Shown: one piece after another, positions 30,053 to 64,000 of the stretch
How the letters are laid out: every line of letters begins with the position of its first letter
Numbering within the stretch: position 1 is the stretch's first letter
Origin: Epithemia pelagica
Taxonomy: Eukaryota; Protista; Bacillariophyta
Assembly: GCA_946965045.2 (NCBI GenBank)
Contig: OX337230.1
Location: 434,001-498,000, forward strand
DNA length: 64,000 nucleotides
Direction: 5' to 3'
Notes under the pieces: model-generated
Database searches by the model: none
What the model was told of the DNA's origin: nothing
What the model saw: the letters and a program-made list of their open reading frames with translations, nothing else
Made by a program: the position numbers and the translations under genes

Positions 30053-30500
30053 CACTGCAACTCCAAAGTCAACCGAATATCAACGAAATACCATGTTCAG
30101 TTGACCCTTCACTGAATATGATGATTCAAAATCCCCCCAACGCCAACGCTCTATTCAGTTGATGACTGCTTCAAATCAGTTAGAATTGCACCAATTCAAT
30201 CTATACTCAGTTGATATAACATATTCAGTTACAACAGTGATTATCATATTCAGTTAAATCCTTTCTTGTTCAACCATCAACGACATTTAATCAGTCCTCC
30301 TCATTGAATAGGACGTTATTCCTCGTACATAACTGATTATCCCTATATCATATTATCACCACACAGTTGATCTAACAGAATAATAGCACACTGATGAATC
30401 ACATCCCCGTCTCCCACATCTCTCGATCTATCTCGTCTTTCGATATTCATCTCTCCCTCTCTCTATATAAAAGTCATTCATGTTCAAATCAACTGTGACA
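30053..30500. repeat. Terminal CACTG plus subterminal (T)CAGTT(GA) motifs in both orientations
   Basis: About 10 copies, e.g. TTCAGTTGAC, TTCAGTTGAT, CTCAGTTGAT, TTCAGTTACA, TTCAGTTAAA, CACAGTTGAT; reverse GTCAACCGAAT, ATAACTGATT, ATCAACTGTG. Confidence 0.75.
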
Positions 30501-30550
30501 GCTCATCTTAATCCATATATTAACCACACGAGAACTATAAGATAAATGCT

Positions 30551-33320
30551 TCATGATCTTCTTGTCCTCATCGTCCGCCGTTTTGACGGTGCTTCCAACA
30601 AGTTTTTCTTGAACAAATCCGTATAGCACTGATTACAATATGCAAATTTGCACGGATGCTCGGCAAGTTTAGCATTTCGACACATCATACATGGATTCTT
30701 TTGATTTACCTTCAAGCCCCCATCTTCTCCAAATCGTTTCTTACATTTTTCACAAGTGGTCGGCCAGTTGTCGTTCTTGTCGTAATACTTCGTAGTAAAA
30801 TACGTAGAAGTATTTTCCGGGACCAACTGACACAGTTGATGATTGGCTAAAGGATCACATTTATTTTCATCGTCAACACACACTGTCGAATTGTCATCAC
30901 TCTTTTTCAAAATTAGAAGTCACATCCATTGTTAGTCCGTTACCAAATTCAAGTCTCACCATTCTTCTAAACCGACACTCACCTTTCTTTTCCTTGGTGA
31001 TGTCCTGGTCTAACAATAAGATATTCACAACAAATCCAATAATTGAGAGATCATTCGGCGCATCACTTCAAGAAGATCAACCTTTCCTTTTACGTACCTT
31101 CTCTTTTCTATTGGTATCGTCTTTGTTTTTTTTCTGTGAACCGCAAAGAATAGTTTTTCATGCACAATGAGTAGGTTTCAATCACACCCTTCCACCATTC
31201 GGATTCGTTCCACATACCTTCTTTGACGACCTTGATACACCTTGTTTGGACAAGGTATTGTCATTCATTACACTTTCCTGTGTAATGAATGTTTGACTAA
31301 TAGACGCCTCCTTCTGTGGTGTTGATGTATGTTCACATTCTTTTGCTATCGTCTCTTTCTCATCTGACTTCTTTTCTTTCGATCGTTCCTCATTTTTGCT
31401 TTCATAAGGAACATCATCCATTACCTTCTCAACTTCCGATGCAATAACCTTACTGCTTGTCCCACAGTGAACAACATTCATTACATTGTCACCAGACGAT
31501 GGAGCACTATTACTGCTCCTCTTCTTTGCAACGTCATCCGGGACCTTGTTGAACTCATGCAGAGCGGCGTTATCATCCCCTGTGTTTTTAACAACACCCT
31601 TCTCCTGTACACGTTTTGTTTTCTCCATATTCTTCTGAGTACTGCCATTTTCTTCGTCCTCTATGTCAGTATTCTTGTGGAATTTTGTCTGTACACCACT
31701 TTCGTTGCAACTTCCTGCCGTGTGACTTTCCATTTCGTTTAAACGACCGGCATCCACATTTTTCTTTTCATTACTTTTCTTGTCATTGCCCCTCAAAACA
31801 GTTTCATTCAACTGAGCCTCGTCGACGATTGCTTGTGTAGCACTGTTGTCCCCATCTTTCATTTCATCTTCACTATCCTCATCGAATATATCAACAACAC
31901 CCAACGGCATGAATTGTTCCACAGGCTCTGGATCAACTTCCGGACCATCTTGCTCCTCATTATGGTTTGTATTCGGACCCTCATTATTTTCCGTCAGATC
32001 TGAAATCTCGGCCGGATTTTTCTGCACAATCAACTCTTTTCCAGTAATTTCACTGTTACCTGGCTGGTCGTTCCGTTTTTGCACAAAACAAGTCGCCCAC
32101 AGGTGACGAACCATTGGAGGATCAATAGCAACGCCAATTTCGCTACTGAATATCTTGCTACACCATTCAAAATCTGGTGTTGCGCTTGTGACCTCGATCG
32201 TATTGCCTTCCACTGCTTGCTGTCAAAACATACGATATTGTTAGTCAACTTGAATTGATTCGGTGTCTGTTGAACAGTAATTGGCGTACCTTTTCCGATC
32301 GATGAACAACATAAAAGAAGCACGATTCGTTATATTGGACTCTTGTTTCATAATTATTGTCTTTGCATTGACCTTTCGTCAGAGTGATACACCAACCGGC
32401 CTTCCTCAACATGGGCATCATCAGGCTTGCCACCATTTGTGATTTCGCAGATCTACCGACGGCCGAAAATCCACCCCTGTCATTTGCAATTTTCCTCGTA
32501 CGCTTCCCATCAACCATCAATGGTTTCTATACCTCAGCCAAACACATCCCTTCCCGGAACAACCACATGTCGATAGCATTCGATAACCATCCTCTGTCTT
32601 TGTGAAAGAGATGCACTAGCTCAAACACCAATCTCTGATTGCTTTCATTGTTTTCTAAGGTCACGACGATGTTTTTGAAATCTTGTATGGAATGAGGAAA
32701 CGACGCTTTCCCCACCATCTTGAGATTCATTTCCTTGGCTTTTAGACGAATATCCTCTGAATACTTGAGAGTGATGAACTGACGAAGACTTTCACGAATC
32801 TCTTTAATTTCAGCCAACATCTTTTCCCCATCAGGCTCTTCAGTATCAGCTAATCCATCTTGACGTCTTGATTTTCTGTACATCCAGAGACGCTTAGCCT
32901 CTTCCGCATTTGCTGGACCTGCACCTGTCTTGTGGTTGAAGAAATCCCTTGGGTATTCAAGTAACTTCCTAGTTGGCTTTCGAGAAACACGACCGTCTTG
33001 TAGGGTATGTGCATCCTGGACGCTGTGACTATTGGGATCTGAATTGCGGCTGCCGCCCATGGTGGTTTCTATCTCATCCACCGTAACGGTGGCAATTTGC
33101 GATTCCATTTCTTGGTTGGTCGTTAGCTGGGTATTATAGACACGTCCATTACCAGAAGATACATGCGAAACGCTATTTTTGTTTTGTGCTAGTGACAAAC
33201 ATCGGTTTATTGATCCAATCACCGACGACATGGTCAATGATCCGTTCGTCCTTTTTGGCTGCACACAAACAGCACAATACTGTGGGGATGCAAATGGCAC
33301 CGATGTTTTAGGGTGTACTA
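30551..33320 (-). CDS. Multi-exon hypothetical gene with an acidic low-complexity middle and a Cys-rich C-terminal domain; in-frame TAG at 32527-32529
   Basis: Consecutive minus-strand ORFs (32527-33300, 32245-32520 in the same frame, 31182-32213, 30551-30910); probable GTACGC...AAGCAG intron near 32215-32285; C-terminal CEKC...CMMC...C..AYCNQCY. The exon structure is uncertain. Confidence 0.5.
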
Positions 33321-33877
33321 TATGAACGAGAGAAAAAGCATGCCTGCTATCTGTGTCGCGCCAGGATCTTGGAAGTAAACATGTACAACTAAGTAATACT
33401 ACATGACGGTTATATCTGTTTATGTCGATTTAAATTTTCGAAAGAATGATGCGAGAGCATGTGTAACATAACTCTAAGTACTGTTATTGTAAGCGCATGA
33501 CAACTCTAAGTAGTACTTTTCCAATAGGTCGTTTTCTTCGTAACGGTAAGTCTTCCTCTGTACATACATAGAGAGACTAAGATTTTCCGCACGCGTCCAT
33601 CCGATGGCATGGTCTACCTCCACATCCTTGTCCTACGTCATGTCTCACGGTAATAAACTATATGCCTGATACGATGTCTCGATGTCTGAAAGGTTGTTTA
33701 CATATCGATATGGTTTTGTGACTGAATACCGGATTAGAAATTATTGTAACATCATATACTGTATTATCATTGAGTTAAAACACTATGAGACATCTAATGG
33801 ATGTCTTATGGACAATATGGCCGGGGGCAACCTTTCATCCGTCTTTTTCTTGCCACCCGAGACCGCAATGAGTGACC

Positions 33878-36800
33878 ATGGAGGGGATACCATTGGAAAT
33901 GCCTTGTCCCTCATGTGGTGAGGTAATTTGCTTGACTCAATCGAATGACTCCCATATTGCAATGGAGACATACCTATACCAGGGAAAGTGTGGCAATGAC
34001 TTGAACACCTGTCCAATGGGAAACAAAACCGTCTATTGTTGTTCTGCATGTCACAGTGAATCAAGCTTTACTCGTTCCAAAGGTTTCATTTCGAAATGGA
34101 AGTATATTGGTCGACATACCAAGTCGAAATATCATATAGAACGAACCAGTCGAAAGAAGATTTGTCCACAAGTACAAGATGAACCTCAACTCTCTATAGA
34201 CGATGGAGTGGAACATGTTGATTTTGATGACAACGTATCGATACCAGCACATACTGATGATCTTTCCATCAGCAACGAATTGGAAACTAATTCTCAGTTC
34301 ATTGGAAACGCACTCCACAATGGACCGATGGAAATCGACTTGAAACAACTTGGCTTTGATGAAAATTCCAAAACACCGATTTTTTTGAAACACGAGATGA
34401 CGAAACCAGGTTTTGGAGCCAGATATCTTGTCGGGAAAGCCTATGGAGTGGATCCTAACGCAATTTCTTCTGAAGAGGCATATTTCTGTCTCAGTCTTTC
34501 GAGTCTACTAGTCCAATTGACTGATAAACAAAAAGAGACGCTTAGTGAGCTAATGACAATTGCTGGGAACAATGGTGATGAGGGACTATCAATTTTCAAG
34601 AACATACGACTGCCCACATCCAAGGACGATTTCGATGTTTTTTTTCTTCGTGGGAAAAATGCCATTTTACCAAATCTCCCCCACCCAATTCCAAAACCAA
34701 CGAGTGACAAAAGCCATTCGTATGTAAGCCTCAAAGATCTTCTCGCAAATGAGTTGGGGAAAGCCACGAAATATGAGGATTATCTATTTCAGAGTCAAGT
34801 TACATCTGAGGCATGTGATTCGGTTCAAAGTGTGTCGATGACAAAGGCCGCCAAGACATTACTTGTTGATATGAGAAGAAATGAGGAACCAAGTGAGTTC
34901 ACAATGTACCTTTGGATCAGGGAATGGCGTGACGACTTCGACCCAAACAACACGAAGTCGTCACGCAATCAAGTGTGGTGTAATACTTACACAATTTGTC
35001 CGCCAAGAAATGAAAACACTCATGGACTGACTACCTATTTTATGGGGTTATCCAGCAAAGGGGAAGATCATGGTAACGTGGAAAGTATTTTGGCTAGCGA
35101 ATTAGAATCCTTATCGACCACAGGAATGAAGTTTTATCATGGTGGAATGAAGCAAGTAGTAACAGTGAAGATCGACAAGTTGTTAATCAGTGTCGACAGA
35201 CCTGAACGTACGTCTATCTTTCAGATAGGTGATCACAACGGGTCGTACTCCACATGTTGGGGGTACGCTACACAAGTCGATGGGACACGAACTACCAATA
35301 ACCTTCCTTCCTGTGATTCTTGTCGTAAGTGGAGAATTAAGCAACTTCTGGAAGGTAGGACAACCATGAACAGTGAGACAGAACGGCCAGCATGTGACAA
35401 ATGTTCTGATTGGTGTTTAGAAGATCCAAAATTCTTATTTCTTGCACCTCCGGAGTATCCTATACGATATGACGAAACAGATGGTGCACCTCTACCGCCA
35501 AAATTCCGAGACCTATGGCATCATATGGAAAGACTACCAACTACACCAGATGGACAAGAAGCAAGACTGGAGGAACCGATGGGGGGGGTCGACCAATGAG
35601 AACAATCGGCCAGTGAGAAAGAGAAAGAAAACGGCTACCAAACCAAAGTACAAAATTTATCTGGGAACTGTCAAGTTGACCATCGAGTGGTTGAAGACAG
35701 CTTGCGTTTTTGCCTGTCACAATGCCGGAACTTTGCTCCCTGGTGGGAGGTCAAATAAGAAGTATTGGACAAAGTCAAATTTCGTAGCCTATTTGAAGAC
35801 ATGTGCCTGTACGAATCGTATTATTGATTCACTGTACAGGGATGTGCAGACGAGACAAGCCGACCAACAGATTGTTTTACCACCCAGTTGGTCCAACGTG
35901 AGGTCGCTGGCCAAATGTCATTATGCCCCGATGCATATGCTGTTTCTAGGCCATGTCAAGAGTAATCTAGACATGGTCTCGAAATGGCTGGGCAAGTTCG
36001 ATTGTTTGGCCACGTTCGGGAAACAAGTCAACCAATACTTACTTGCAATCCGATCACTTCGTTGTACAAAGTATTTCTCTGCTCAACCTTTGTCCACCTC
36101 TTCGTGGGGCACGGGCGTATGGGTGAGTGAGAATTACCTCTTAGCCTCCCGTATATGGAGATTCCTACTGTGTGTTCCATCACTACGCCATCAGAGACTC
36201 GCCTCGAAACCAGACTTCCTTCCCGAAAGAAAGGTTATTGAACGCTTCATCGTTATGATGAATCTTTGTTTATCAAGGATCATGGCAAATAGACAGGAGA
36301 TAGTAGATTTGCACGATCTCGTTTTGATTTACATGGACGCTATGGTGGATGTGGATGATATATTACTCGCGGCGGAAAAACAAAAGAAACTACCCAATTT
36401 CGTAAAGTCAAACTCATTGGGAATCCTATCGTGTGCATTAACACACCATGAGATGGGCCCTGCCCTCCTTCACTGGGAAGGGGGTTGGGAGGGGGAACGT
36501 AAAATTCAAAAAATGAAACCCCTACTTCACATTAAGCGAAGCAATGCAGATTGGCAAAATTTAACACTTCGCAAATTATATCAGCACGACACAATCCAGT
36601 GGATCCTAGCACAGGATCCATCCTACGCAGACAAGATCCTTTCACGGAAACGAGAGAGTGAGAGTATGGTGAGAGTTTTTCGGAATCGCCAGGAAGCCTT
36701 ACAAGCCATAAACGATTGCGAGATCCTGAGTGCTATTCTATTGAATGACGACAATATATACCTGGCATTCCGCCCAATCGGCGAAGTGTCAAGGGGAAAC

Positions 36801-37097
36801 ACACGTAGTATGGTGAAACTCTTGCCACTTTGTTTTGACGACAGTCAGGGAACTCTCAGTGATACATTGTGTTGGACAGCACCGATCGGAGTATCACAAG
36901 ATGGCAATGAACACTTGTTCGAATCCTTGGCTCATATTAACCAAGAGGCGCTATCAGAAGTATTCTTACTACTGCCTTCTATGTCAGAAGTAAGCAATAC
37001 ATTCGTCAATTCCTATTGGTGTGTGGGCAACAACTGGAGAGAACGAACTGAGTCAGGTCAATTTCAGTACCCAATCTTGAGTAATACCTTATTTTAG
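33878..37097 (+). pseudogene. Plavaka/CMC (EnSpm-like) transposase 1, split by one frameshift between ~35490 and 35600
   Basis: N-terminal C2H2-like CSAC...H...H; WIREWRDDFDPNNTK..RNQVW; SVDRPER; HYAPMHMLFLGHVK; GPALLHWEGGWEGERKIQKMKP. Confidence 0.72.
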
Positions 37098-37114
37098 AAT
37101 GTTCGTTCTTTATT

Positions 37115-38548
37115 TCAGTGTTGCCATGGAAAACAAACTACAATGGGGATGATTGCCCATCCCTGAAGTCGTTTAGTAGTCTTCTTCTGTTTCCGGATCA
37201 GTCCAGCTTTTTCGATAATCCGTAAGATGGAGGTCGTAGTTCGAATGGTTGCGTTGTCTTGATTATATGAATGAAGAGTAACAAGTTGGTGGAAATGTGA
37301 AGTTGGTACCCATACATCATCACTATCCGAAGGCATTCCACAATGATTCACTATGTAAACAACCATGTCGTATATGCCGAAGAGAGAAGGATCAGTTTGG
37401 AACGACTTGTCGATGAAATAGGGTGATTTGGTCCATTCCAATACACAGGATATAGTCTTCTTGCTCACTTTAACCTTGGTCCATGATTCTTCTGCCGTTG
37501 TAGGGACATTATCAATTGGAGTGTTACTTAGTAACGGTAATAAGCGATTCTTCATACCCAAACGAACTCCCAAACATCGTCTTGGAATGAATATTATGAG
37601 TCCCTCTCCCCAGGCATTACTTGGCGAGATGGATGAGAATTTACTTAAAACTTGGTTTCTTCTCGATGTAATGCAAGGTAGCATTCTCTGCATCTGTTCA
37701 AAGTATGGCAGAACATCGTCACACCTGAGACTGGTGGTTGTACCTCTAGGGTCCAAGCGATCTTTCTTGGCTGCCGTCGCTGCATCTTGGTTTTTGCTCG
37801 ATAACACCATGCCACAACCGAACCATTTTCCCATGGTTACGAAAGCAACTTGTTCCACAAAGCATATAGGCTTGGACATTGTGAGGAGCATGGAACAAGA
37901 CCTACCACCAGTCAATATCTCGTCAACAATGATACCGAAATTGTGGTGTTTGGCCAATAGCCCAAGACGCGACAAACAACGGTCTGATAAAATACTTCCG
38001 TTGGAAGCAAGGAGTAACTCGACAAAGACTGTTGTGACCGGCTGATTGATTGACTTTTGGAAGAAGCATCTTTTGTGTAGAAGATGTAAACACAAATCTT
38101 CGTAAGAATGGGCTTGTCGGGTTGGTATCGTCCCCGGAATGTAGTATGGGAGAGGAATGGTCTTTCTCAATGCACAGATCGAGATATCATTGGATTCAGG
38201 GTCGTACAAATAAGATGGTCCATTGTCTACGTGAAAACTTGCAGTTGACCAGTGTTGAAGGGGTCCAAGGTCACCAGCGACGTAGCTACCACATCCAACT
38301 AAGACGCCACTGGTTTCACCATTGCTGAGGCTTGTAATGGCATATAGGTTAGCGTCGGAGCCATTCGGTGTCAACTTCTCCAAAGAAAACTGACCGTTTG
38401 TAACTTCACATATAATACCTCGTAATGTTGTCTCAGAGGTTGAATCTGAGTATAAAAAGGAATCAACAGATTTCCTTTTGTGAGGAGAACGGGTGCGGTG
38501 AGGGATAACAAATGAGGCGCCCCAATGATTAGCCAGATCGTCACACAT
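37115..38548 (-). CDS. Class III PLP-dependent aminotransferase-fold protein
   Basis: FVELLLASNG, IIVDEILTGGRS (cf. DEVxTGxGR), FVTMGKWFGCG (PLP lysine). The likely start is ATG 38548; the longer ORF to 38809 runs through a CGCGTG-repeat stretch. Confidence 0.75.
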   Translation of the reverse strand: MCDDLANHWGASFVIPHRTRSPHKRKSVDSFLYSDSTSETTLRGIICEVTNGQFSLEKLTPNGSDANLYAITSLSNGETSGVLVGCGSYVAGDLGPLQHWSTASFHVDNGPSYLYDPESNDISICALRKTIPLPYYIPGTIPTRQAHSYEDLCLHLLHKRCFFQKSINQPVTTVFVELLLASNGSILSDRCLSRLGLLAKHHNFGIIVDEILTGGRSCSMLLTMSKPICFVEQVAFVTMGKWFGCGMVLSSKNQDAATAAKKDRLDPRGTTTSLRCDDVLPYFEQMQRMLPCITSRRNQVLSKFSSISPSNAWGEGLIIFIPRRCLGVRLGMKNRLLPLLSNTPIDNVPTTAEESWTKVKVSKKTISCVLEWTKSPYFIDKSFQTDPSLFGIYDMVVYIVNHCGMPSDSDDVWVPTSHFHQLVTLHSYNQDNATIRTTTSILRIIEKAGLIRKQKKTTKRLQGWAIIPIVVCFPWQH

Positions 38549-38624
38549 GAAGAGATGGTGGCAAAAGAAGGATGATATACGTCTAAGGAGGTTTTTTGAA
38601 GATAAGTGACTGGAATTCCACCAA

Positions 38625-38810
38625 CAGGCGCGTGACACACGCCCAACAGGCGCGTGCAGCACCCCCAGAACACGGATCACGCGCATTTGGCGCGTACGAA
38701 GCGCGTGGCGCTCCAGATTGCGCGTGAATGCGCGTGAAACGTGTAGACAACGCGTGAAACGTGTTGACACCCGCGTGAGCATGTTTATTGTATGTGGAAA
38801 CGCGTGCACA
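38625..38810. promoter_or_regulatory. Cluster of about 8 CGCGTG motifs upstream of the aminotransferase
   Basis: GGCGCGTGAC, GGCGCGTGCA, GCGCGTGG, GCGCGTGAA (x2), ACGCGTGAA, CCGCGTGAG, ACGCGTGCA. Confidence 0.45.
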
Positions 38811-39222
38811 GAGCCTAACCTTTGCCTAGATACCTAACTACTAGCTACACATATAACACCTAGTATTCCAGTCGCACGTAAACTCCAAAAGCGACCCACA
38901 AATTTCTCCTCCACCACCAAATCACGTCACAGTGACATACGAAGAACAATGGACACAAAATCACGGAAGAACGCTGAAAATTAGATTTTCCTCACACAAC
39001 AACCACACAAAAGATATACTCTCCCACTTTTGTGATCACTTTTGGACGATAGTGTCATAGAGTGCCTCATCCAACTCACACCAACCCCCAACGCCCCAAA
39101 AAACACACAGCAGCAGCAACAACAACAACAACAACAACACAACAGCAACAACAACAACAACAGCTACAACAAACAGGCGAACACAAAGAGAATCATTTCC
39201 TTTTTCAAATTGGAAAGGTGCT

Positions 39223-41380: not shown

Positions 41381-41492
41381 GGTTTCCATCACGCAAGCTT
41401 GAGAAACGGTAGTATCAAGTTGCATCGGAACCCTGCATCGAAAGAAAATTTCTCCTCATTTCTTCCCCAAGCTGATTGAATCGCACGTTAAT

Positions 41493-51545: not shown

Positions 51546-51554
51546 CTGTTTAAT

Positions 51555-52826: not shown

Positions 52827-53227
52827 TGCGTAAGCCAGAGAGTTTTATCTCACCGCTTGTGTAAAAATGATTACTTGATGATCAAACAGAATGAACCTAT
52901 CACATTCAAGAAAAAGAAGAGACGAGACTTCTACTAAGATGTGTTTGTTTTTTTATGAAGAATAATGGGTCGGCTGCCGTTTGTGGATACCACATGGACA
53001 TCTATCTCATACTATCCCTCATCACGTGTCACTCTTTTTAATAAACGGATTACCACTCCGACATGTTGGGGAGTATATTATTGGGACCACTTCTCTGAAA
53101 TAAATATTACGGATACCACTCGGACATCCCCCATGACCTTTGTTGGTGGTTGAAAACACACCCCCCCTCACCCCCACCCACCACCCACCCCCTTATTGGT
53201 TATACAGAACGACTTTCACTGACACCT

Positions 53228-56200
53228 TCATGATCCAGCAGTGTTACGATCTGTTGTTGTTGTTTGTGAAGGATCTGATGATGATGTATATCTTGCTCTC
53301 AACGAATCACTTGCTGAGTCATTGAACTCATTGGCCCATTTACTGGCAGGAAGTACCTCCCATACAATATCGGAATAGTTCCTGTGATTCCGAGTATATT
53401 CAAGCAATATTTCTCTTTCCGCATCAGAATGCAGGTATTCCGGTACCTTATCTCGGTGTTGGATCATTTCCGGGTTTTCATCGATCACTCCTACCAATTC
53501 AACTATATTGGTGATAGGAACCAATACAAGATCGGGAACACGGGAATTCCGGGTAAAGGCCTTGCTCCATCGAATGAAAAGGACGGAGGACTTCTCTTTA
53601 TCCTTGTCACTACGACGATAAGTGGTTCGTAGTAAAGCATGTGTGACATCTCTCGATTTTTCTTGGTGGATTCTTGATGTACGAGCATCATTTCCCTGTT
53701 CTTGCATGTGACCAGCACTTTCCCGTTGTTCCCATGGTCTGCGTATGAAGCATAAAACCTGACAGAGTACCAAGATATTGTCTGTTCCCTGATTACCTGT
53801 TGCAGTGTCAGTGAATGGTGTTCGCTGGTGTCGTGGGATCCATGCTTTCACCCAGTCTCTCCAAGGACCCTCACTTTGGTAATTAGGATGACATCGGATA
53901 CCACCTATGTTTTCGTCCCTGAATTTGACCTCTGTACACCCATGGATCATGATGTAATCACTTGTGTCATTCTGTTGTATAATATTCATTTGTGTGAAGA
54001 GTGCACTTGCATGTTTCACCAGGAAGTCAAGGATTACTTTTGGGAGGATCATACCGGTATTTGTTTTCGAAATGTACTTGTAAGTACACTTGACCACGGG
54101 GCTCTCTGTCCGTCCAGATCTGACCAATTGGATTTGTATTGTTGTCCCTCGCCCCTTGAATTTACATCTATCTTCTTCATCGTCCTCGTCATCATTCTCA
54201 TGACTATGATACACTTGACTTCTTTTTTTCCTTGCCATAATGGTTGGAGATTGACCATTTTTTAGTAGCTCCACGTCATCTTGTTTGATCCCTGATGCTT
54301 TACAGAGCAGATCCCATGCCTGCATCTGCCATATGTTATCACCAAGTTGACTGTCGAAGACACCCTTACCCCGCTTTTGTACTGTTTTGGCATTCAGTTT
54401 GACAATTTCTTTGTGGTTACTCTCCTCTGATTCAGTGTCGGATATTTTAACTGGGCCGAAATTGGACACCTGTCGAACTATATGTACCAAGTTGTGGTAT
54501 TTTGGGATCATCCAACCATTGCACATCAGTTTCCCTTTTTTATCCAATCGTGGTGCATACCGCCGTATACCATCCATCATTATCTTGACAGATTCAACTG
54601 ATCGTCGCACTGTTTCCTTCGCAGCAGGAGAACGTGGGTCGCTATCCCAAAATCTATCCATCCTTGTCCAGCTGTTGAAACAGAGTATTGTCTCAAACAG
54701 GAAGAGGAAATCCAGATATGGTTCCCGCTCACCTTCATCCCAGATCGATGCATATGCCACAGGGTCATCGTCGAATACTGTTTCGCTCGTAACCTGTACC
54801 TCAATGTCAGGTTCACAATATTGGTAATCTTCATTTTCCTGTACATGAACGGGCAGATTGTCGTTGATATTTGTGGTTATTTCTTCGTTACTATCATCCA
54901 CAGGTGAGTCATTCTCATCCGAATCGGATGAAGCATCAGCGATACTGTGGTGTACAACCGGGTTTTTTTTCGATTGTCGTTGACGTTTATTGTTGGTAGA
55001 GGATACGTTGTTTTGTCCAGCGCCCATTCGTTGTCGTTTTTTCTTTTTTTTTTCTAATTCATTTTTCTTTCTCTTCCGTTCTTTCTCTTCTTCCTTTTTC
55101 TTTCGTCTCTCTTCTTCTTCTTTGCACCATTGTTTCCACTCTGCAACTACTTTTTTCCATTTCTCCGCCATAGTCGAAGCGAAAATAAGATGACCACGAA
55201 CAGAAACACACAAAGCGGCTGAGACAAACATAATACCAACCCATTCATTGGCTGTTACCTTTGTAACATTACTGATACCTGCAGAGAAGGATGTTCTGGG
55301 GTACCCCCAACTAGAAGAATAAGAGAATACCGACTGCCGGTTGGCTCGGAAGAAAGAGCTGTACAAGAAATCAAACATGGCTTTTTCTCTCATTGTCATC
55401 AGAGCAAAGAAATCAGTCATGATATATTTCATGATCCCCGATTTCAAAGTATGTAATACATCACAACATGCCGCGGTAAAAATCCCATGTGTTTTATTAA
55501 CACCCTCACCCAAATACAAATGGTTGTAGATGTTGTTCACTGGGTATTGTCCAATCTGATGTAAAATTTTCTTGGAATTGTTCACAGGTTCTCTCCAAGG
55601 ATCCTCTCTCGGATCATCTATACCGGGTTGTCCAGAATCGATAACTATTGGGTTTCCTGATGGTTTATCTAAACCAAGCACACGGAGGCTTCTGAAATGG
55701 ATAGGGTTTTTGAAGAGGTAGTTGCATGTGGACCATGGGTATCTAGACTCCCGAGGTGTGCAATCACACTGCCAAACAAGCCGGCCAACACTTTGATGAT
55801 GAGATGCATATCTTCCTGCGATGTTATCTTGCGACTTCGCATCTCCCTTTATCATGATCACGGGTAATACTAATCTCACCACCTTCTCGATCCCATGGAT
55901 CCGTAATCGCATCCACAATCCACCTCGATTCTGTATCTTCAAAAGAGCTTGGTGTATTCGCGAGAGCTGTGCATGATAATTCCGACAGGGGGACCCCCTA
56001 TCCAAGATGTATTTGGCCGCAGATGACTTCCGTTCCATATCTGTGATCAACCCTAAGATGATTTGTCTATTCGGTTTTCGCATTTCAGACATCGTCAAAA
56101 ATGAAGGTACCATAACAACAGGTTCCGCATTAAAGCGACCATCCCCTGTCGCGTGTGTCTTATCCATATAAGACAATAAACCAACAACGAAAGTATCGTT

Positions 56201-59200
56201 GTCATGTCTGTATTTCCGTACGGTACGTTGGAAAACATGGCCATCTTGTATGTTTTCAAGACATTTATTCGGTGTATACGGGCGATACGGGTCGTCATCA
56301 CATAATATTGTTTTATCCTTGGAAGTGGCTTCAGGATCTTGCAAGACCCGTCGAAGTTGATGCACAAAATCAAACATAACGGTATCAACGGACTTCTCGC
56401 TGTCTGGAACAATTATATCCTTTTTGGTTGTAACTTCCATTGGGACGGTGACAATCTTTGGTTTGGGGAAATCGAAACCTCTTTTTTCGAATTTCGCCAT
56501 GAATCCCTTTCGCCGTGGATGTTTTTTATTGAAAAAACGTGAGCCACAACACTCGTTAGTATAATCAATCCATGCCAAAATGGCATCGAACATGAACTTC
56601 GGACACCCAGCATTCCGGAGGAGTATGGCCAACCTCAATAAAGCCTTGTCATCTTCGGAAAATCGGAGACCATTTTGTTCAAGATACACTGGAAATTCCA
56701 AAGGATTGTCTTTTGAGTTTTCATCGATAACATGGTCATCACTGGATGAACCTTTGCCTTGGACATCCTCATTATCATCGACAGTTTGTTGGAGACAATA
56801 TTGGTAATCTTCATTTTCCTGTACATGAACGGGCAGATTGTCGTTGATATTTGTGGTTATTTCTTCGTTACTATCATCCACAGGTGAGTCATTCTCATCC
56901 GAATCGGATGAAGCATCAGCGATACTGTGGTGTACAACCGGGTTTTTTTTCGATTGTCGTTGACGTTTATTGTTGGTAGAGGATACGTTGTTTTGTCCAG
57001 CGCCCATTCGTTGTCGTTTTTTCTTTTTTTTTTCTAATTCATTTTTCTTTCTCTTCCGTTCTTTCTCTTCTTCCTTTTTCTTTCGTCTCTCTTCTTCTTC
57101 TTTGCACCATTGTTTCCACTCTGCAACTACTTTTTTCCATTTCTCCGCCATAGTCGAAGCGAAAATAAGATGACCACGAACAGAAACACACAAAGCGGCT
57201 GAGACAAACATAATACCAACCCATTCATTGGCTGTTACCTTTGTAACATTACTGATACCTGCAGAGAAGGATGTTCTGGGGTACCCCCAACTAGAAGAAT
57301 AAGAGAATACCGACTGCCGGTTGGCTCGGAAGAAAGAGCTGTACAAGAAATCAAACATGGCTTTTTCTCTCATTGTCATCAGAGCAAAGAAATCAGTCAT
57401 GATATATTTCATGATCCCCGATTTCAAAGTATGTAATACATCACAACATGCCGCGGTAAAAATCCCATGTGTTTTATTAACACCCTCACCCAAATACAAA
57501 TGGTTGTAGATGTTGTTCACTGGGTATTGTCCAATCTGATGTAAAATTTTCTTGGAATTGTTCACAGGTTCTCTCCAAGGATCCTCTCTCGGATCATCTA
57601 TACCGGGTTGTCCAGAATCGATAACTATTGGGTTTCCTGATGGTTTATCTAAACCAAGCACACGGAGGCTTCTGAAATGGATAGGGTTTTTGAAGAGGTA
57701 GTTGCATGTGGACCATGGGTATCTAGACTCCCGAGGTGTGCAATCACACTGCCAAACAAGCCGGCCAACACTTTGATGATGAGATGCATATCTTCCTGCG
57801 ATGTTATCTTGCGACTTCGCATCTCCCTTTATCATGATCACGGGTAATACTAATCTCACCACCTTCTCGATCCCATGGATCCGTAATCGCATCCACAATC
57901 CACCTCGATTCTGTATTTTCAAAAGAGCTTGGTGTATTCGCGAGAGCTGTGCATGATAATTCCGACAGGGGGACCCCCTATCCAAGATGTATTTGGCCGC
58001 AGATGACTTCCGTTCCATATCTGTGATCAACCCTAAGATGATTTGTCTATTCGGTTTTCGCATTTCAGACATCGTCAAAAATGAAGGTACCATAACAACA
58101 GGTTCCGCATTAAAGCGACCATCCCCTGTCGCGTGTGTCTTATCCATATAAGACAATAAACCAACAACGAAAGTATCGTTGTCATGTCTGTATTTCCGTA
58201 CGGTACGTTGGAAAACATGGCCATCTTGTATGTTTTCAAGACATTTATTCGGTGTATACGGGCGATACGGGTCGTCATCACATAATATTGTTTTATCCTT
58301 GGAAGTGGCTTCAGGATCTTGCAAGACCCGTCGAAGTTGATGCACAAAATCAAACATAACGGTATCAACGGACTTCTCGCTGTCTGGAACAATTATATCC
58401 TTTTTGGTTGTAACTTCCATTGGGACGGTGACAATCTTTGGTTTGGGGAAATCGAAACCTCTTTTTTCGAATTTCGCCATGAATCCCTTTCGCCGTGGAT
58501 GTTTTTTATTGAAAAAACGTGAGCCACAACACTCGTTAGTATAATCAATCCATGCCAAAATGGCATCGAACATGAACTTCGGACACCCAGCATTCCGGAG
58601 GAGTATGGCCAACCTCAATAAAGCCTTGTCATCTTCGGAAAATCGGAGACCATTTTGTTCAAGATACACTGGAAATTCCAAAGGATTGTCTTTTGAGTTT
58701 TCATCGATAACATGGTCATCACTGGATGAACCTTTGCCTTGGACATCCTCATTATCATCGACAGTTTGTTGGAGACAATATTGGTAATCTTCATTTTCCT
58801 GTACATGAACGGGCAGATTGTCGTTGATATTTGTGGTTATTTCTTCGTTACTATCATCCACAGGTGAGTCATTCTCATCCGAATCGGATGAAGCATCAGC
58901 GATACTGTGGTGTACAACCGGGTTTTTTTTCGATTGTCGTTGACGTTTATTGTTGGTAGAGGATACGTTGTTTTGTCCAGCGCCCATTCGTTGTCGTTTT
59001 TTCTTTTTTTTTTCTAATTCATTTTTCTTTCTCTTCCGTTCTTTCTCTTCTTCCTTTTTCTTTCGTCTCTCTTCTTCTTCTTTGCACCATTGTTTCCACT
59101 CTGCAACTACTTTTTTCCATTTCTCCGCCATAGTCGAAGCGAAAATAAGATGACCACGAACAGAAACACACAAAGCGGCTGAGACAAACATAATACCAAC

Positions 59201-61318
59201 CCATTCATTGGCTGTTACCTTTGTAACATTACTGATACCTGCAGAGATGGATGTTCTGGGGTACCCCCAACTAGAAGAATAAGAGAATACCGACTGCCGG
59301 TTGGCTCGGAAGAAAGAGCTGTACAAGAAATCAAACATGGCTTTTTCTCTCATTGTCATCAGAGCAAAGAAATCAGTCATGATATATTTCATGATCCCCG
59401 ATTTCAAAGTATGTAATACATCACAACATGCCGCGGTAAAAATCCCATGTGTTTTATTAACACCCTCACCCAAATACAAATGGTTGTAGATGTTGTTCAC
59501 TGGGTATTGTCCAATCTGATGTAAAATTTTCTTGGAATTGTTCACAGGTTCTCTCCAAGGATCCTCTCTCGGATCATCTATACCGGGTTGTCCAGAATCG
59601 ATAACTATTGGGTTTCCTGATGGTTTATCTAAACCAAGCACACGGAGGCTTCTGAAATGGATAGGGTTTTTGAAGAGGTAGTTGCATGTGGACCATGGGT
59701 ATCTAGACTCCCGAGGTGTGCAATCACACTGCCAAACAAGCCGGCCAACACTTTGATGATGAGATGCATATCTTCCTGCGATGTTATCTTGCGACTTCGC
59801 ATCTCCCTTTATCATGATCACGGGTAATACTAATCTCACCACCTTCTCGATCCCATGGATCCGTAATCGCATCCACAATCCACCTCGATTCTGTATCTTC
59901 AAAAGAGCTTGGTGTATTCGCGAGAGCTGTGCATGATAATTCCGACAGGGGGACCCCCTATCCAAGATGTATTTGGCCGCAGATGACTTCCGTTCCATAT
60001 CTGTGATCAACCCTAAGATGATTTGTCTATTCGGTTTTCGCATTTCAGACATCGTCAAAAATGAAGGTACCATAACAACAGGTTCCGCATTAAAGCGACC
60101 ATCCCCTGTCGCGTGTGTCTTATCCATATAAGACAATAAACCAACAACGAAAGTATCGTTGTCATGTCTGTATTTCCGTACGGTACGTTGGAAAACATGG
60201 CCATCTTGTATGTTTTCAAGACATTTATTCGGTGTATACGGGCGATACGGGTCGTCATCACATAATATTGTTTTATCCTTGGAAGTGGCTTCAGGATCTT
60301 GCAAGACCCGTCGAAGTTGATGCACAAAATCAAACATAACGGTATCAACGGACTTCTCGCTGTCTGGAACAATTATATCCTTTTTGGTTGTAACTTCCAT
60401 TGGGACGGTGACAATCTTTGGTTTGGGGAAATCGAAACCTCTTTTTTCGAATTTCGCCATGAATCCCTTTCGCCGTGGATGTTTTTTATTGAAAAAACGT
60501 GAGCCACAACACTCGTTAGTATAATCAATCCATGCCAAAATGGCATCGAACATGAACTTCGGACACCCAGCATTCCGGAGGAGTATGGCCAACCTCAATA
60601 AAGCCTTGTCATCTTCGGAAAATCGGAGACCATTTTGTTCAAGATACACTGGAAATTCCAAAGGATTGTCTTTTGAGTTTTCATCGATAACATGGTCATC
60701 ACTGGATGAACCTTTGCCTTGGACATCCTCATTATCATCGACAGTTTGTTGGAGCCCATCATCATGATCTGCTGGTGGTCCCTCTTCTTGGTCCTCGTCT
60801 GATTCTTCCTCATTCTCAGATGACAGCAAGGAATGAGCAATATTTGTACTATTCCGACATGGCTGTCTCACGATGGGTTGTTTTTGTGTAGTGGGTTGCA
60901 GATCCTCTCTTTCCTCATCTTCTCGATCGTCCGCCCAGGGTATCCCTACAGCACCATCGTCGGTTCCTCCATTTTCTGAAATCCCTACAGCACTATCATC
61001 GGTTCCTTCATTTTCTAAATGATTTCCCTGATCTTTATCATGAGAGGTATTGTTCTCGACACCAGCAGTTTCGTGGCATATCATGGACGATTCGTGCTCC
61101 AATGCATGTGAGACCAAAGTGTCGTTTTCTCTTTTGGTGCTACAAACCCTTTCATGTTGGAAGATCCCGGAGACGTGGAATAATACATGACAATTTCTAC
61201 ATTTACGACATGGAAGAATGGAACCACCTGTACTCGCATTTGGATCTTCGCCTACCCATTGATCTTTGATGACGGAAGGTTTATTTCTTAAATACCTTGG
61301 TTTACAAGGACGGCCCAT
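53228..61318 (-). CDS. Plavaka-type transposase 2 with an in-frame triplication of a 660-aa segment (2696 aa)
   Basis: CRKC...HERVC Zn motif; LSYMDKTHATGDGRFNAEP; IKGDAKSQD; CDVLHTLKSG; IPKYHNLVH..FGPVKISDTESEESNHKEIVK. Confidence 0.85.
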   Translation of the reverse strand: MGRPCKPRYLRNKPSVIKDQWVGEDPNASTGGSILPCRKCRNCHVLFHVSGIFQHERVCSTKRENDTLVSHALEHESSMICHETAGVENNTSHDKDQGNHLENEGTDDSAVGISENGGTDDGAVGIPWADDREDEEREDLQPTTQKQPIVRQPCRNSTNIAHSLLSSENEEESDEDQEEGPPADHDDGLQQTVDDNEDVQGKGSSSDDHVIDENSKDNPLEFPVYLEQNGLRFSEDDKALLRLAILLRNAGCPKFMFDAILAWIDYTNECCGSRFFNKKHPRRKGFMAKFEKRGFDFPKPKIVTVPMEVTTKKDIIVPDSEKSVDTVMFDFVHQLRRVLQDPEATSKDKTILCDDDPYRPYTPNKCLENIQDGHVFQRTVRKYRHDNDTFVVGLLSYMDKTHATGDGRFNAEPVVMVPSFLTMSEMRKPNRQIILGLITDMERKSSAAKYILDRGSPCRNYHAQLSRIHQALLKIQNRGGLWMRLRIHGIEKVVRLVLPVIMIKGDAKSQDNIAGRYASHHQSVGRLVWQCDCTPRESRYPWSTCNYLFKNPIHFRSLRVLGLDKPSGNPIVIDSGQPGIDDPREDPWREPVNNSKKILHQIGQYPVNNIYNHLYLGEGVNKTHGIFTAACCDVLHTLKSGIMKYIMTDFFALMTMREKAMFDFLYSSFFRANRQSVFSYSSSWGYPRTSISAGISNVTKVTANEWVGIMFVSAALCVSVRGHLIFASTMAEKWKKVVAEWKQWCKEEEERRKKKEEEKERKRKKNELEKKKKKRQRMGAGQNNVSSTNNKRQRQSKKNPVVHHSIADASSDSDENDSPVDDSNEEITTNINDNLPVHVQENEDYQYCLQQTVDDNEDVQGKGSSSDDHVIDENSKDNPLEFPVYLEQNGLRFSEDDKALLRLAILLRNAGCPKFMFDAILAWIDYTNECCGSRFFNKKHPRRKGFMAKFEKRGFDFPKPKIVTVPMEVTTKKDIIVPDSEKSVDTVMFDFVHQLRRVLQDPEATSKDKTILCDDDPYRPYTPNKCLENIQDGHVFQRTVRKYRHDNDTFVVGLLSYMDKTHATGDGRFNAEPVVMVPSFLTMSEMRKPNRQIILGLITDMERKSSAAKYILDRGSPCRNYHAQLSRIHQALLKIQNRGGLWMRLRIHGIEKVVRLVLPVIMIKGDAKSQDNIAGRYASHHQSVGRLVWQCDCTPRESRYPWSTCNYLFKNPIHFRSLRVLGLDKPSGNPIVIDSGQPGIDDPREDPWREPVNNSKKILHQIGQYPVNNIYNHLYLGEGVNKTHGIFTAACCDVLHTLKSGIMKYIMTDFFALMTMREKAMFDFLYSSFFRANRQSVFSYSSSWGYPRTSFSAGISNVTKVTANEWVGIMFVSAALCVSVRGHLIFASTMAEKWKKVVAEWKQWCKEEEERRKKKEEEKERKRKKNELEKKKKKRQRMGAGQNNVSSTNNKRQRQSKKNPVVHHSIADASSDSDENDSPVDDSNEEITTNINDNLPVHVQENEDYQYCLQQTVDDNEDVQGKGSSSDDHVIDENSKDNPLEFPVYLEQNGLRFSEDDKALLRLAILLRNAGCPKFMFDAILAWIDYTNECCGSRFFNKKHPRRKGFMAKFEKRGFDFPKPKIVTVPMEVTTKKDIIVPDSEKSVDTVMFDFVHQLRRVLQDPEATSKDKTILCDDDPYRPYTPNKCLENIQDGHVFQRTVRKYRHDNDTFVVGLLSYMDKTHATGDGRFNAEPVVMVPSFLTMSEMRKPNRQIILGLITDMERKSSAAKYILDRGSPCRNYHAQLSRIHQALLKIQNRGGLWMRLRIHGIEKVVRLVLPVIMIKGDAKSQDNIAGRYASHHQSVGRLVWQCDCTPRESRYPWSTCNYLFKNPIHFRSLRVLGLDKPSGNPIVIDSGQPGIDDPREDPWREPVNNSKKILHQIGQYPVNNIYNHLYLGEGVNKTHGIFTAACCDVLHTLKSGIMKYIMTDFFALMTMREKAMFDFLYSSFFRANRQSVFSYSSSWGYPRTSFSAGISNVTKVTANEWVGIMFVSAALCVSVRGHLIFASTMAEKWKKVVAEWKQWCKEEEERRKKKEEEKERKRKKNELEKKKKKRQRMGAGQNNVSSTNNKRQRQSKKNPVVHHSIADASSDSDENDSPVDDSNEEITTNINDNLPVHVQENEDYQYCEPDIEVQVTSETVFDDDPVAYASIWDEGEREPYLDFLFLFETILCFNSWTRMDRFWDSDPRSPAAKETVRRSVESVKIMMDGIRRYAPRLDKKGKLMCNGWMIPKYHNLVHIVRQVSNFGPVKISDTESEESNHKEIVKLNAKTVQKRGKGVFDSQLGDNIWQMQAWDLLCKASGIKQDDVELLKNGQSPTIMARKKRSQVYHSHENDDEDDEEDRCKFKGRGTTIQIQLVRSGRTESPVVKCTYKYISKTNTGMILPKVILDFLVKHASALFTQMNIIQQNDTSDYIMIHGCTEVKFRDENIGGIRCHPNYQSEGPWRDWVKAWIPRHQRTPFTDTATGNQGTDNILVLCQVLCFIRRPWEQRESAGHMQEQGNDARTSRIHQEKSRDVTHALLRTTYRRSDKDKEKSSVLFIRWSKAFTRNSRVPDLVLVPITNIVELVGVIDENPEMIQHRDKVPEYLHSDAEREILLEYTRNHRNYSDIVWEVLPASKWANEFNDSASDSLRARYTSSSDPSQTTTTDRNTAGS
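54815..60754. repeat. Three head-to-tail 1980-bp copies (54815-56794, 56795-58774, 58775-60754)
   Basis: The junction TTGGAG|ACAATATTGG occurs twice; only 2 variant positions were noticed among the copies. Confidence 0.97.
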
Positions 61319-61751
61319 GGTATTGGTTTTGTGGTCCTTAGTCTTTGTGGAATGAGAATCATTGCTAATGTGACGACTGACACGAATGGTTTCGATTTTA
61401 TGGTCGCCCGGCTCGCTTTTTCATTGGTTGTGGATGGATATGGTTTACCCCCACCCCCCGCCCATCCACCCATACTATTCTACATAAACTATGAGTCTAT
61501 CGGTACATGGGATCGGAACGAACACAAATGCCCATGTGGCATTGGTCGTTTGAATGTATGATTGTCGCCTGTCGATTTGGTTCAATTCAAAAAAAACCGG
61601 GTGTACTCGGAACAAACGGCTCGACTTTTGAAAGTTGATAGTCGAAAGGTAAGACCTCAATGAAAACGGATTGGCATAACATTCTCCTCTTGTTGCACCC
61701 AAAACTCATTGCATTGTCAACACTTCTTATATCAGGTATACTCTTCTTGTC

Positions 61752-64000
61752 ATGTCGCCCCCTTCTGAAACAAACCAGGGGACCAAGAATAGAAAACAAG
61801 GAAGCCAACGCTGTGGTGATCCAAAGCAAGATAAAAAGGACAACCAAAACAGTAAGAATTCAGCGTTCCATGGTTTATCTGGTGGCAAAGATGCTGGAGA
61901 AAGCAGTACCGATGATGAAACAGACGACGAAGAAATAACGATCAGAGATGTCAACAACAAGAATAGCAATGATGACCGTAACCAAGAGGATTCAGGATCC
62001 GTATCTGAAAAGAGTCAGGTAATATTTCAGGAAAGAGGAGGACGGGGAGCTTCATCCAACGAATCCCAGGACCAAGGTAGTACCATGAGCTGTACAGGAA
62101 CCCGTGGTGTTACTAATACAGGAGCACCTATGGAATCCGAACACAATACTGCTGTTATGAATGGAGTCGACCATGGTCAGCGAGTTCCTTATAATGCGAA
62201 TGGAGTTGCTCCATATCCGAATCATACCCATCCTTATCCTCACCAGCAACCAAATCCATTGGTGTTGTCATTTCTTCCTCAAGGGCAACAACAACATCAG
62301 GTCCATACACAGTTCAATTATTCCCAAGCTCCTCTTGGGGGGCAACAACATCATCATTTCCCGGCGGCCTCATCATCTACGATTTATCCACAACAAGGAA
62401 CTGGTATTATGGTGCATCAAGGATACCCACAACAGCAGATGATGTCTGTCCCATACCCACCCAATGGGGGCGTTCTGATGCAAGGAGGCGCTGGTGTTCA
62501 CCAACCACAGCAAACACAGATGCACCATATGGATACAAATAATATTGAGTGCGCAGCTAATGACAATGGTGGTGTGACTGTAATGTCGCACCAAGATGTT
62601 GAAAATATTATGGAAGAGGTTATGGGTGGTGGTGGTGGTGGTGGCGGAGGAGTCAGTCGCGTTTGTAAGTAAGGTGTACTTCCTTTGTTTTGTTTGTGCC
62701 CTATCGGTATTGACTGGTTAGAGTGGAACTCTAATCTGGGTTGATGTGGGTTTGGAAATGTACAATCGAAAAAGATGTGGACTTCTGGATGGATGATGTT
62801 TCCTCACTTTCTGATCTCTCTTGGTCGTCATCATCTCTTGTAGCCATGGAAGTCAGAGGCGATAGCTCAATGGTTGCATCATCTATCTATGGTACTAGTG
62901 ATGGTCAGAGTTCTGGGGCTAATGCAACGTCTGGTGAGAGGGAAAGAAGGAGAGAATACAAGAGGGAAAGAAAGAGAGAACAGCAAAGAAAGAGCAGGAG
63001 CAAATACAAGGATCTACCCTTAGCTTGTCGTACGGATGAGTTCCAGACTTTTGTGCCTGATGTTGCTTGGAGGTACGTGAAGTATTTCTCACTTGCCGAT
63101 GATTGTGATGCAGATGATAATGGATTATGGCATTTGGGGAAGGATCACTTCAAGGCGTATTTCGAACGAGAAAAGATTATTCGTGATGTGGCTAAGGCAA
63201 AGTGGTGGGAAAGGTATTCCCCCCATTTGAGGAAAGAATTCAGACGCAAGAGATCAAATGTTCTACAATCGCTTAGGTTCAGGTTCATGAGTAAGTTGGT
63301 ACTGTCTTGGTGTTATCTTGTTCTCATTCTTGTGGAAAGTTTTGCTCTAACATGAGCCTTCCTGCCTGGCAGAACATTTCTCGTTAAATCTATGGAGAAC
63401 ACATGGTGGTGGAATTGTTCGGCGACAATTCCCTAAGTTATTGGTTGACGATGAAAATCTAGGTCCTATGCCAAGTCTTGAAGAGATGATGCAAATGAGA
63501 GGAGTGAATGGAGACAATGATGCTTATGTTTTCATGTTTGAAGTATTTGGGGGGTCGGTTTATGGAGATGGAATGGTGAGAGATATCATTAATCAAGATA
63601 TTACAGCTAATACACCAGAAGCACAAAAGCAAGCAATATGGAAGGAAGCGATGAGGAAGTTTACTACGAGTGATGAAGCTTTCATTCTCTTGGCTCTTGA
63701 AGATTCATGGGATGCATGGGCTCTGAGGAGCAGACAAGAGTTCAAACAAAAGTTGTACAAAGAAGACCCTGCTTGGTGTCAAGCGCACCAAATTAATGAG
63801 GACATTGATACAGATGGAGTAGAACAATACAAGTATTCAGGTTGTGCAAACAAAAAGGGACGTGGTATGAGTGATATTGGCCTTGATCGTCTTGATGAAT
63901 TGCAGCAGAAGGTGAGGGATGATCGAGAATATGTATCAGTTGATGGACTGTTTCAGAGACAAAATGTGTTCATGGAGAATCTTCTTAAGAAACATCGGGA
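61752..64000 (+). CDS. Transposase-partner gene (multi-exon, runs off the right edge) with a TSDEAF-motif domain
   Basis: ORFs 61752-62672 and 62741-63355 end at GTAAG donors. An open frame from ~63375 to the edge reads ...FTTSDEAFILLALEDSWDAW...GMSDIGLDRLDELQQKVRDDRE. Confidence 0.6.

Follow-up and report, generated by a model that had tools for sequence, protein, structure and literature searches.

A probable nest of two DNA transposons, the inner one Plavaka-like and carrying a TET-like gene, inside a copia-type retrotransposon of the diatom Epithemia pelagica

Fungal DNA transposons of many lineages, Plavaka included, encode TET/JBP dioxygenases (Kojima 2025, PMC12730594), an association that, according to this paper, Iyer et al. 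2014 were the first to note. Plavaka elements belong to the CMCT clade, generate target-site duplications (TSDs) of 2-3 bp and terminate in TGT..ACA (PlavakaA) or CATCA..TGATG (PlavakaB) (PMC12730594). In the red alga Bostrychia moritziana, giant Plavaka elements of 17.4-19.1 kb carry three accessory genes and have tandem repeats beside a 2-oxoglutarate (2OG)-oxygenase protein (bioRxiv 10.1101/2025.02.11.637652). Here we analyzed a 64,000-bp stretch of the diatom Epithemia pelagica (the window; GenBank assembly GCA_946965045.2, contig OX337230.1, called C3 below, C3:434001-498000) together with the DNA to the right of its end (L011, C3:498001-503000). Bare coordinates refer to the window, and C followed by a number denotes a contig of this genome. 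An initial annotation of the window had described its right-hand part as a single giant transposon, more than 34 kb long, with CACTG ends, Plavaka-like transposases and a diverse cargo, inserted into a copia gag gene. The analysis indicates that the block, 36,351 bp in length, is very probably a nest: a copia-type element holds an outer CACTG-ended element, termed A, and A in turn holds B, an inner, autonomous, TET-carrying Plavaka-like element.

The limits of the outer insertion could be read from its host. At the left junction (30052/30053) the sequence ...CGTACTGTA is followed directly by CACTGCAACTCC, while the undisturbed sibling copia at 6380-6400 reads CGTACTGTAGATCTAT. A genome search with the 200 bases to the left of this junction matched 18 copia copies, none of which runs across into the new DNA, and about 17 intact copia copies represent empty sites for the insertion. 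The 400 bases expected past the break were found, 100% identical and on the same strand, at C3:500406-500805 without a left-hand partner in front, and the right junction in L011 consists of ...GACTTGCAGTG, then TA, then GATCTATATTTAAATTATGAGG. The outer insertion thereby extends over C3:464053-500403. It is bounded by perfect 8-bp terminal inverted repeats (TIRs; CACTGCAA/TTGCAGTG, with 10 of 12 bases matching overall) and by a TA duplicated at both sides, the target copy being 30051-30052. A Pfam scan, which took in the window open reading frames (ORFs) of at least 150 aa, identified zf-CCHC, gag_pre-integrs, SH3_retrovirus and RVT_2 in the sibling copia, in the order gag knuckle, integrase region and RVT_2; the break point falls inside the first (gag) ORF. 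Comparison with the intact sibling and the 18 genomic copies confirms the interruption of gag proposed in the initial annotation, and the right TTGCAGTG end, the TA duplication and the resumption of gag that it predicted were all located 2.4 kb past the window end. The genome-wide search that it had also suggested yielded the empty copia sites, a single copy of A at high identity and at least 14 further copies of B.

Within these limits lies a second element with boundaries of its own. A genome search revealed that the DNA from ~38577 to L011:722-725 is a repeat with at least 14 other copies at 97-99% identity, flanked on both sides by single-copy DNA. Elsewhere in the genome the left end of this repeat recurs at least 14 times and the right end at least 15 times, again at 97-99% identity and without CACTG arms. 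The CGTCTAAGG/CCTTAGACG ends are identical in all B copies examined, namely seven further copies read whole and the ends of others. A 2-bp TSD was matched in 11 of 12 left/right pairs (TA, GA, CA, CG, TG, TT, TA, TA, CA, CT and GA), the chance of matching flanking dinucleotides being 1/16 per pair. Because the copies share their ends and 11 of the 12 pairs carry matching dinucleotides, B is a bounded cut-and-paste element that generates a 2-bp duplication and has no strict target sequence. The motif GCGCGTG occurs seven times in B; every copy is terminal, no farther than about 150 bases from an end, and the 25 kb between contain none. The copies are collinear; bounded pairs span about 8-26 kb, the seven long copies measure 19-26 kb, and the length differences reflect satellite length and internal deletions. 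Given at least 58 TET-like matches in the genome, which fall into several divergence classes, and 12 bounded copies at 97-99% identity, the B system looks recent.

B encodes a putative DDE transposase of unusual length in this copy, in which the triplicated stretch (~54.8-60.8 kb) contains the first two catalytic Asp residues and repeats its features at a spacing of 1,980 bp. The same unit is single in seven other B copies, the triplication being present in this copy only, and the canonical enzyme has 1,376 aa in an open frame (L026:5717-9844, minus strand). A word-indexed protein search had returned two relatives each for the B transposase and the TET-like gene, and exhaustive phmmer was used thereafter for the transposase. 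It recovered 1,318 relatives. Of the eight distant ones scanned, three exceeded the cut-off of the Pfam Plavaka model (P0019, 46.9 bits; P0022, 43.3 bits; P0036, 33.9 bits), and phmmer connects the B enzyme with these at E=1e-46 to 1e-56. Protein language-model features (Atlas), whose nearest families serve as leads only, placed the B transposase at 0.97 to Plavaka clusters, with 219 of 256 features in common. In an 11-sequence alignment, D399, D506, C531, C545, H955-x3-H959 and E979 are invariant. These residues agree with the layout of the CMCT clade, in which a Cys pair and an H(3-4)H motif stand between the second Asp and the last Glu (PMC12730594), and the first Cys pair of the B transposase is C-x-C, not C-x2-C. 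Judged by its sequence, the B transposase is probably kin to Plavaka.

The gene content of B is also conserved beyond this genome. A contig of another organism (L059) encodes a transposase 56% identical to that of B and, flanking it, counterparts of four B genes, namely the two Cys-rich genes, the 204-aa ORF and, for its N-terminal part, the RING gene. As far as the contig end, the L059 sequence showed no TET-like gene. Since L059 keeps four homologues, most of what appeared to be cargo in B is a conserved family gene set and not the product of random capture.

A further gene of B encodes a 647-aa protein with a predicted catalytic domain in its C-terminal half. AlphaFold2 (AF2) modeling of this half, with 13 paralogues and homologues, gave a pLDDT of 70.6 and a pTM of 0.76. 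In a Foldseek search against the PDB, the 18 best matches were CMD1, TET2 and CcTet (E=5e-6 to 5e-4), with NgTET1 ranking lower; TM-scores normalized by query over these 18 were 0.33-0.48. A set of 14 paralogues and homologues shows no variation at H200, D202 and H249 and next to none at R258 and H262, in agreement with the H-x-D...H iron triad and 2OG-binding Arg of TET/JBP dioxygenases; the distal His residues are candidates for the third iron ligand. Atlas placed the protein at 0.95 to Tet_JBP clusters. A double-stranded beta-helix fold of the TET/JBP type is supported by the predicted model for this protein.

About 15 further TET-like copies at ~50% identity, many of them in open frames that reach 1,776 aa, lie in a second transposon family (for example C10:561940-562851, C8:85052-85990 and C17:2382685-2383620), and a further TET-like class shows 33-37% identity in frames of 620-650 aa. 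Units related to the 170-bp satellite of B (68-79% identical; window 47771-51543 versus C10:562967-563218) stand directly 3' of the TET-like domain in the second family. As these alignments have it, a repeat of the 170-bp type and a TET-like gene travel together in two families.

By analogy with the described systems, the B dioxygenase would probably oxidize 5-methylcytosine (5mC) on the element, which could thereby escape methylation-based silencing. Because diatom 5mC is reported to be largely confined to transposons (PMC12344493), this transposon-borne TET-like enzyme may be regarded as a testable candidate anti-silencing factor in diatoms. We consider it doubtful that the enzyme instead modifies thymine, like JBP and some TET-like enzymes, or marks the B satellites for segregation or targeting, rather than countering silencing. 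The TET/JBP fold does not fix the substrate, and the Naegleria TET-like enzyme acts on thymine too (PMC12344493); the 170-bp satellite or related units occur near the TET-like gene in two families, and the red-algal Plavaka 2OG-oxygenase protein, encoded beside tandem repeats, was proposed to bind them (bioRxiv 10.1101/2025.02.11.637652). Anti-silencing is, however, the proposal made for the closest described systems (PMC12730594).

B is comparable to the TET-carrying PlavakaB elements of Agaricomycetes in its cut-and-paste character, Plavaka-like DDE transposase, short TSD and TET/JBP gene inside the TIRs, and likewise shows several copies and a recent burst. It differs from them in its diatom host, its size of 20-26 kb, its two internal satellites and its four more conserved genes, and the Pfam Plavaka and Tet_JBP models do not score the B proteins directly. 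With the red-algal giant Plavaka elements B shares giant size, accessory genes beside the transposase, a 2OG oxygenase and internal tandem arrays, whereas the red-algal accessory set, compared by description, is different (PAG1; N6-adenine methylase plus SET; ParB plus 2OG-oxygenase). In terms of its predicted proteins, B is a diatom extension of a strategy published for fungi (TET-carrying elements) and red algae (giant Plavaka with accessory genes); new in B are its termini, its conserved five-gene set and its built-in satellites. Full-text literature searches found no description of TET-carrying or giant Plavaka elements in diatoms. The initial annotation knew of no diatom description of the giant element that it proposed; giant and TET-carrying Plavaka elements as such are already known in red algae and fungi.

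Without B and one TA, element A measures 10,206 bp. In the genome search its left arm (30053 to ~38577) was single-copy at high identity and had relatives at only ~70% identity. One of these, on contig C6 (C6:514080 down to 503978), is 10,103 bp long with identical 8-bp ends and a TSD of TT, and its coding parts are 67-72% identical to those of A. Another organism (L074, ENA ERZ21939226) carries an A-type element of 10,946 bp with 12-bp ends starting CACTGCAAGTCA and a TSD of AC; its transposase is 54-57% identical to that of A, and the two elements have a common gene order of two minus-strand genes, the transposase and a convergent partner gene. Neither the C6 nor the L074 element contains any B block. 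Three independent A-type elements with the same ends thus measure 10-11 kb, and the size of A is therefore ordinary. Once B is removed from A, the L074 protein aligns in a single frame over the joint, which supports the exact B boundaries in A, and removing each insert restores the copia and A sequences, respectively.

The ends of A are those expected of a CACTA-type element. The first 400 bases contain seven CAGTT, where the remaining arm would predict 0.34, bearing out the CACTG end and the subterminal CAGTT motifs described initially, and TTCAGT[TG] is clustered at the ends, with four copies near the left one, five near the right one and a single copy in the rest of the 10 kb. The TSDs of the family are TA (here, against 17 empty copia sites), TT (C6) and AC (L074). 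A accordingly presents the CACTA/CMC(T) traits of CACT(A/G)..(C/T)AGTG termini, a 2-bp TSD (2-3, up to 5 bp in the superfamily) and subterminal repeats at both ends. Compared with the CACTA/EnSpm-Mirage-Chapaev group (CMC/CMCT), A is alike in its CACTG termini, its 2-bp, Mirage-like TSD, its subterminal repeats and, by eye, a large transposase with C-x2-C and H-x4-H; it differs in lacking a Transposase_21/Plavaka Pfam match and a profile link to the B transposase, and in its constant 477-aa partner. The L074 element (L074:5696-16641, ERZ21939226 ctg1316l) stands between an S-methyl_trans/Pterin_bind gene call and a B12-binding/Met_synt_B12 gene call, and from these calls it appears to split a methionine-synthase-like gene.

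The A transposase changes frame at a G8 run (near 35582-35615). Its two frames both align with P0156, a homologue of 971 aa, leaving 11 residues unmatched, and the break may be a genuine frameshift or a homopolymer or assembly error. None of the 57 homologues of the A transposase carries a Pfam domain, and a Pfam scan of the transposase and seven homologues, Transposase_21 and Plavaka models included, gave no match. Its Atlas neighbors are Plavaka (0.90), Transposase_21 (0.89) and RAG1 families (0.83), as leads only; WRDDFDP, VDRPER, C-x2-C and H-x4-H could be recognized by eye in the order expected for CMC-type enzymes.

The partner gene stands tail-to-tail beside the transposase in all three A-type elements (here, C6 and L074), in A across a 17-bp gap, and has at least 13 open paralogues in the genome at 44-66% identity. 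A Pfam scan of two relatives and PDB searches with the partner gene, by sequence and by profile, gave no match. The AF2 model of the 477-aa protein, built from a 3-sequence alignment, had a pLDDT of 35.7, with only the C-terminal 80 residues at 60-75, and was unusable for a fold search. The stretches NGSDAN, DEILTGGR and MGKW are invariant in the three partner-gene sequences, and we take them to resemble class-III aminotransferase signature motifs; the product is weakly indicated to be class-III, pyridoxal phosphate (PLP)-dependent aminotransferase-like. Disruption of its coding sequence by B was considered and judged less likely: the frame is open across the joint once B is removed, but A itself retains the conserved Met, 31 bases from the joint, and B probably lies in the leader rather than in the coding part of the partner gene. 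With A there is thus a second family, in which an uncharacterized, possibly PLP-enzyme-like gene consistently accompanies the transposase.

We propose that a copia gag received the ~10.2-kb cut-and-paste element A, with its CMC-like DDE transposase, partner gene and two small conserved genes, and that A in turn holds the 26.1-kb element B, 31 bases upstream of the conserved start codon of the partner gene. Each transposase would bind its own subterminal motifs (TTCAGTT for A and GCGCGTG for B), cut at its own ends and insert with a 2-bp staggered cut.

Several observations weigh against this picture or parts of it. One B copy (L013-L015, C17:1183549-1208880) has differing flanks, TG on the left and CA on the right, which are reverse complements; it could be a recombinant of two copies or carry a mutated TSD. 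The B termini CGTCTAAGG..CCTTAGACG match neither published Plavaka type. Pfam gave no direct match to the B transposase, Plavaka (PF18759) included, and the link of B to Plavaka is transitive. For the 647-aa protein there was no Pfam match even at E=10 (Tet_JBP PF12851, 2OG-FeII_Oxy_6; only its language-model neighbors belong to these families), and the TM-scores of its model to solved TETs are modest (0.40-0.48). The superfamily placement of A rests on ends, TSD, language-model features and motifs seen by eye, and BLASTP and hhalign revealed no significant link between the A and B transposases, one hhalign stretch aligning the last-Glu regions at a probability of 0.2. In the comparison with Plavaka and Transposase_21 profiles suggested initially, neither transposase gave a direct Pfam match, while relatives of the B enzyme do pass the Plavaka cut-off. 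Finally, divergence does not tell the order of the A and B insertions: 8 changes over 3,507 bases separate the copia from its sibling (~0.2%), 13 changes are private to this B copy in an eight-copy alignment of 3,887 bases (~0.3%), and ordering by these values was rejected since both are upper bounds and not separable.

The order of events could accordingly be reversed, with B entering A first and the 36-kb composite then moving as a unit into copia via the A ends, which we judge unlikely. Both A ends and the subterminal motifs are intact, the private changes of B are no fewer, proportionally, than those of copia, so that B need not be younger, and cut-and-paste movement leaves no donor copy of A to expect. 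However, A is single-copy at high identity with no second composite in the genome, all three comparable A-type elements measure 10-11 kb, and the divergence values, as upper bounds from 8 of at least 14 B copies, cannot order events; the A transposase frame is also broken at the G8 run, although this could be an assembly error. An elaborated version, in which the A ends carried a complete 26-kb B piggyback into copia in one 36-kb event and the TET-like enzyme and satellites form a self-demethylating module protecting both A and B, is less likely still.

A single giant CACTG/Plavaka transposon, with the TET-like gene, RING/Zn genes, satellites and second transposase as its cargo, is very improbable. 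The outer TIR and TSD do bound all 36 kb, but the supposed cargo block has TIRs and a TSD of its own and at least 14 copies elsewhere without CACTG arms, and the relatives of A lack the block; it is for these reasons that we read the locus as a nest. The insertion of more than 34 kb announced in the initial annotation exists as a TIR- and TSD-bounded block, but it is not one mobile unit: the CACTG element itself accounts for 10,206 bp, and the TET-like gene, RING/zinc genes, satellites and second transposase belong to the separate transposon B. The annotation is corrected to this effect, the apparent 36-kb cargo transposon being a nest whose cargo belongs to the inner element. Resemblance to Starship and other giant cargo elements is confined to the impression of a large mobile multi-gene block. 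A and B are TIR/TSD DDE transposons, the size of the locus comes from nesting and satellites, and no domain of a Starship tyrosine-recombinase captain was present in the Pfam scan of ORFs of at least 150 aa.

Public short-read runs of one study, on two samples, yield contigs that contain the stretch. A 1,739-base unitig spans L011:693-2431, covering the A right arm, with no differences and at a depth of ~60-70, against ~1,300-1,700 for the flanking B and copia DNA. It reaches 30 bases into B and 28 into copia, the expectation of a k=31 graph at a unique/repeat border; being one base short of the bridging rule, and from runs that may be the source of the assembly, it provides consistency, not independent proof. 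Loose ends at L011:722/723 represent flanking DNA of other B copies, and loose ends at 2402 represent uninterrupted copia. That the locus is an assembly artefact of misjoined repeats is scarcely credible: the B ends and the copia that meet A at the junctions are high-copy repeats and the 1,980-bp triplication could be an assembly product, but all four junctions show exact 2-bp duplications, excision restores copia and A, and unitigs from the two samples, perhaps themselves the assembly's source, span the unique right arm with the depth of single-copy DNA and extend into the repeat on each side.

Table 1. Coordinates of the nested elements and their features (window positions unless L011 or C3 is given).
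Feature	Position	Strand	Basis or remark
Host copia-type retrotransposon, left part up to gag break	27209..30052	+	99.75% identical to window 3549-6392
A left arm, 8,527 bp	30053..38579	+	Single copy at high identity; last two bases TA (38578-38579) = target duplicated by B
A left TIR CACTGCAA	30053..30060	+	Partner TTGCAGTG at L011:2396-2403
A subterminal TTCAGT[TG]/CAGTT cluster	30053..30400	+	Motif counts
A acidic ORF, 343 aa	31182..32213	-	N-terminal match only, 39 aa at 67%, to L074 gene in same place
A conserved ORF, 257 aa	32527..33300	-	63% identity over 234 aa to L074 gene in same place
A transposase, ~1,070 aa in two frames	33872..37097	+	Frame switch between 35581 and 35616
A partner gene, 477 aa	37115..38548	-	Aminotran_3 (PF00202) E=0.011, 14.9 bits versus cut-off 30.5
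B, 26,143 bp in all	38580..64000, on to L011:722 (C3:498722)	+	TA at 38578-38579 and L011:723-724
B left TIR CGTCTAAGG	38580..38588	+	Partner CCTTAGACG at L011:714-722
368-bp duplication, then 105-bp satellite	39223..41376	.	13.6 units at 39958-41376; variable length in other B copies
ORF, 1,003 aa, with C-terminal C3HC4 RING-type motif	41493..44504	+	RING families E=7.6e-5 to 4e-3, all below cut-off
TET/JBP-fold 2OG/Fe(II) dioxygenase-like gene, 647 aa, catalytic half C-terminal	44684..46627	+	Predicted fold, invariant residues
Cys-rich ORF, 291 aa	46667..47542	-	L059 homologue 30% identity, E=3e-22
170-bp satellite (~170 bp x ~20)	48097..51543	.	Up to ~6.5-kb array in other B copies
Cys-rich ORF, 423 aa, related to 291-aa ORF	51555..52826	-	41% over 321 aa to L059 gene adjoining transposase
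B Plavaka-like DDE transposase (putative), 2,696 aa here	53228..61318	-	1,980-bp stretch triplicated in frame
Two ORFs, Gln/Gly-rich 306 aa and 204 aa	61752..63355	+	204-aa ORF 47% identical to L059, same side of transposase
A right arm, 1,679 bp	L011:725-2403 (C3:498725-500403)	+	Single copy, past window

Among the remaining genes (Table 1), the 1,003-aa RING-type ORF is open in all seven long B copies, and its N-terminal part is conserved in L059. The 343-aa and 257-aa ORFs of A gave no Pfam match. Pfam matches to Ctr, Hisat_C, BUD22 and DUF4223 among the window ORFs were set aside as low-complexity noise. With respect to the gene identities first assigned, the two transposases and the TET/JBP fold are supported, the RING assignment holds at the motif, sub-threshold level only, and the aminotransferase match is weak (E=0.011). 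The gaps of 17 bp and 39 bp that separate convergent ORFs were confirmed, as were the two satellites (105 bp x 13.6 and ~170 bp x 20).

Many B copies are located near contig ends, and some are cut by them (C13:25 kb; C20:60-79 of 79.8 kb; C10:3.429/3.433 Mb; C7:3.845/3.857 Mb; C16:3.0-3.2 of 3.227 Mb). This distribution hints at a clustering of B copies in subtelomeres or other repeat-rich DNA.

Upstream of the copia gag, a long ORF (26913-29072; 3505-5412 in the sibling), which has no Pfam match, lies inside the 99.75% duplicated stretch (27209-30052 and 3549-6392); on this alignment it belongs to the repeated unit and is not a unique host gene. On the other side of the insertion, homology of the copia to its sibling ends again at L011:3068 (C3:501068), 663 bases after its resumption, where read contigs have loose ends at 3067/3068. 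This stop may reflect a further insertion or a truncation, and the 700 bases beyond it resemble window 932-1616 at 94.5%.

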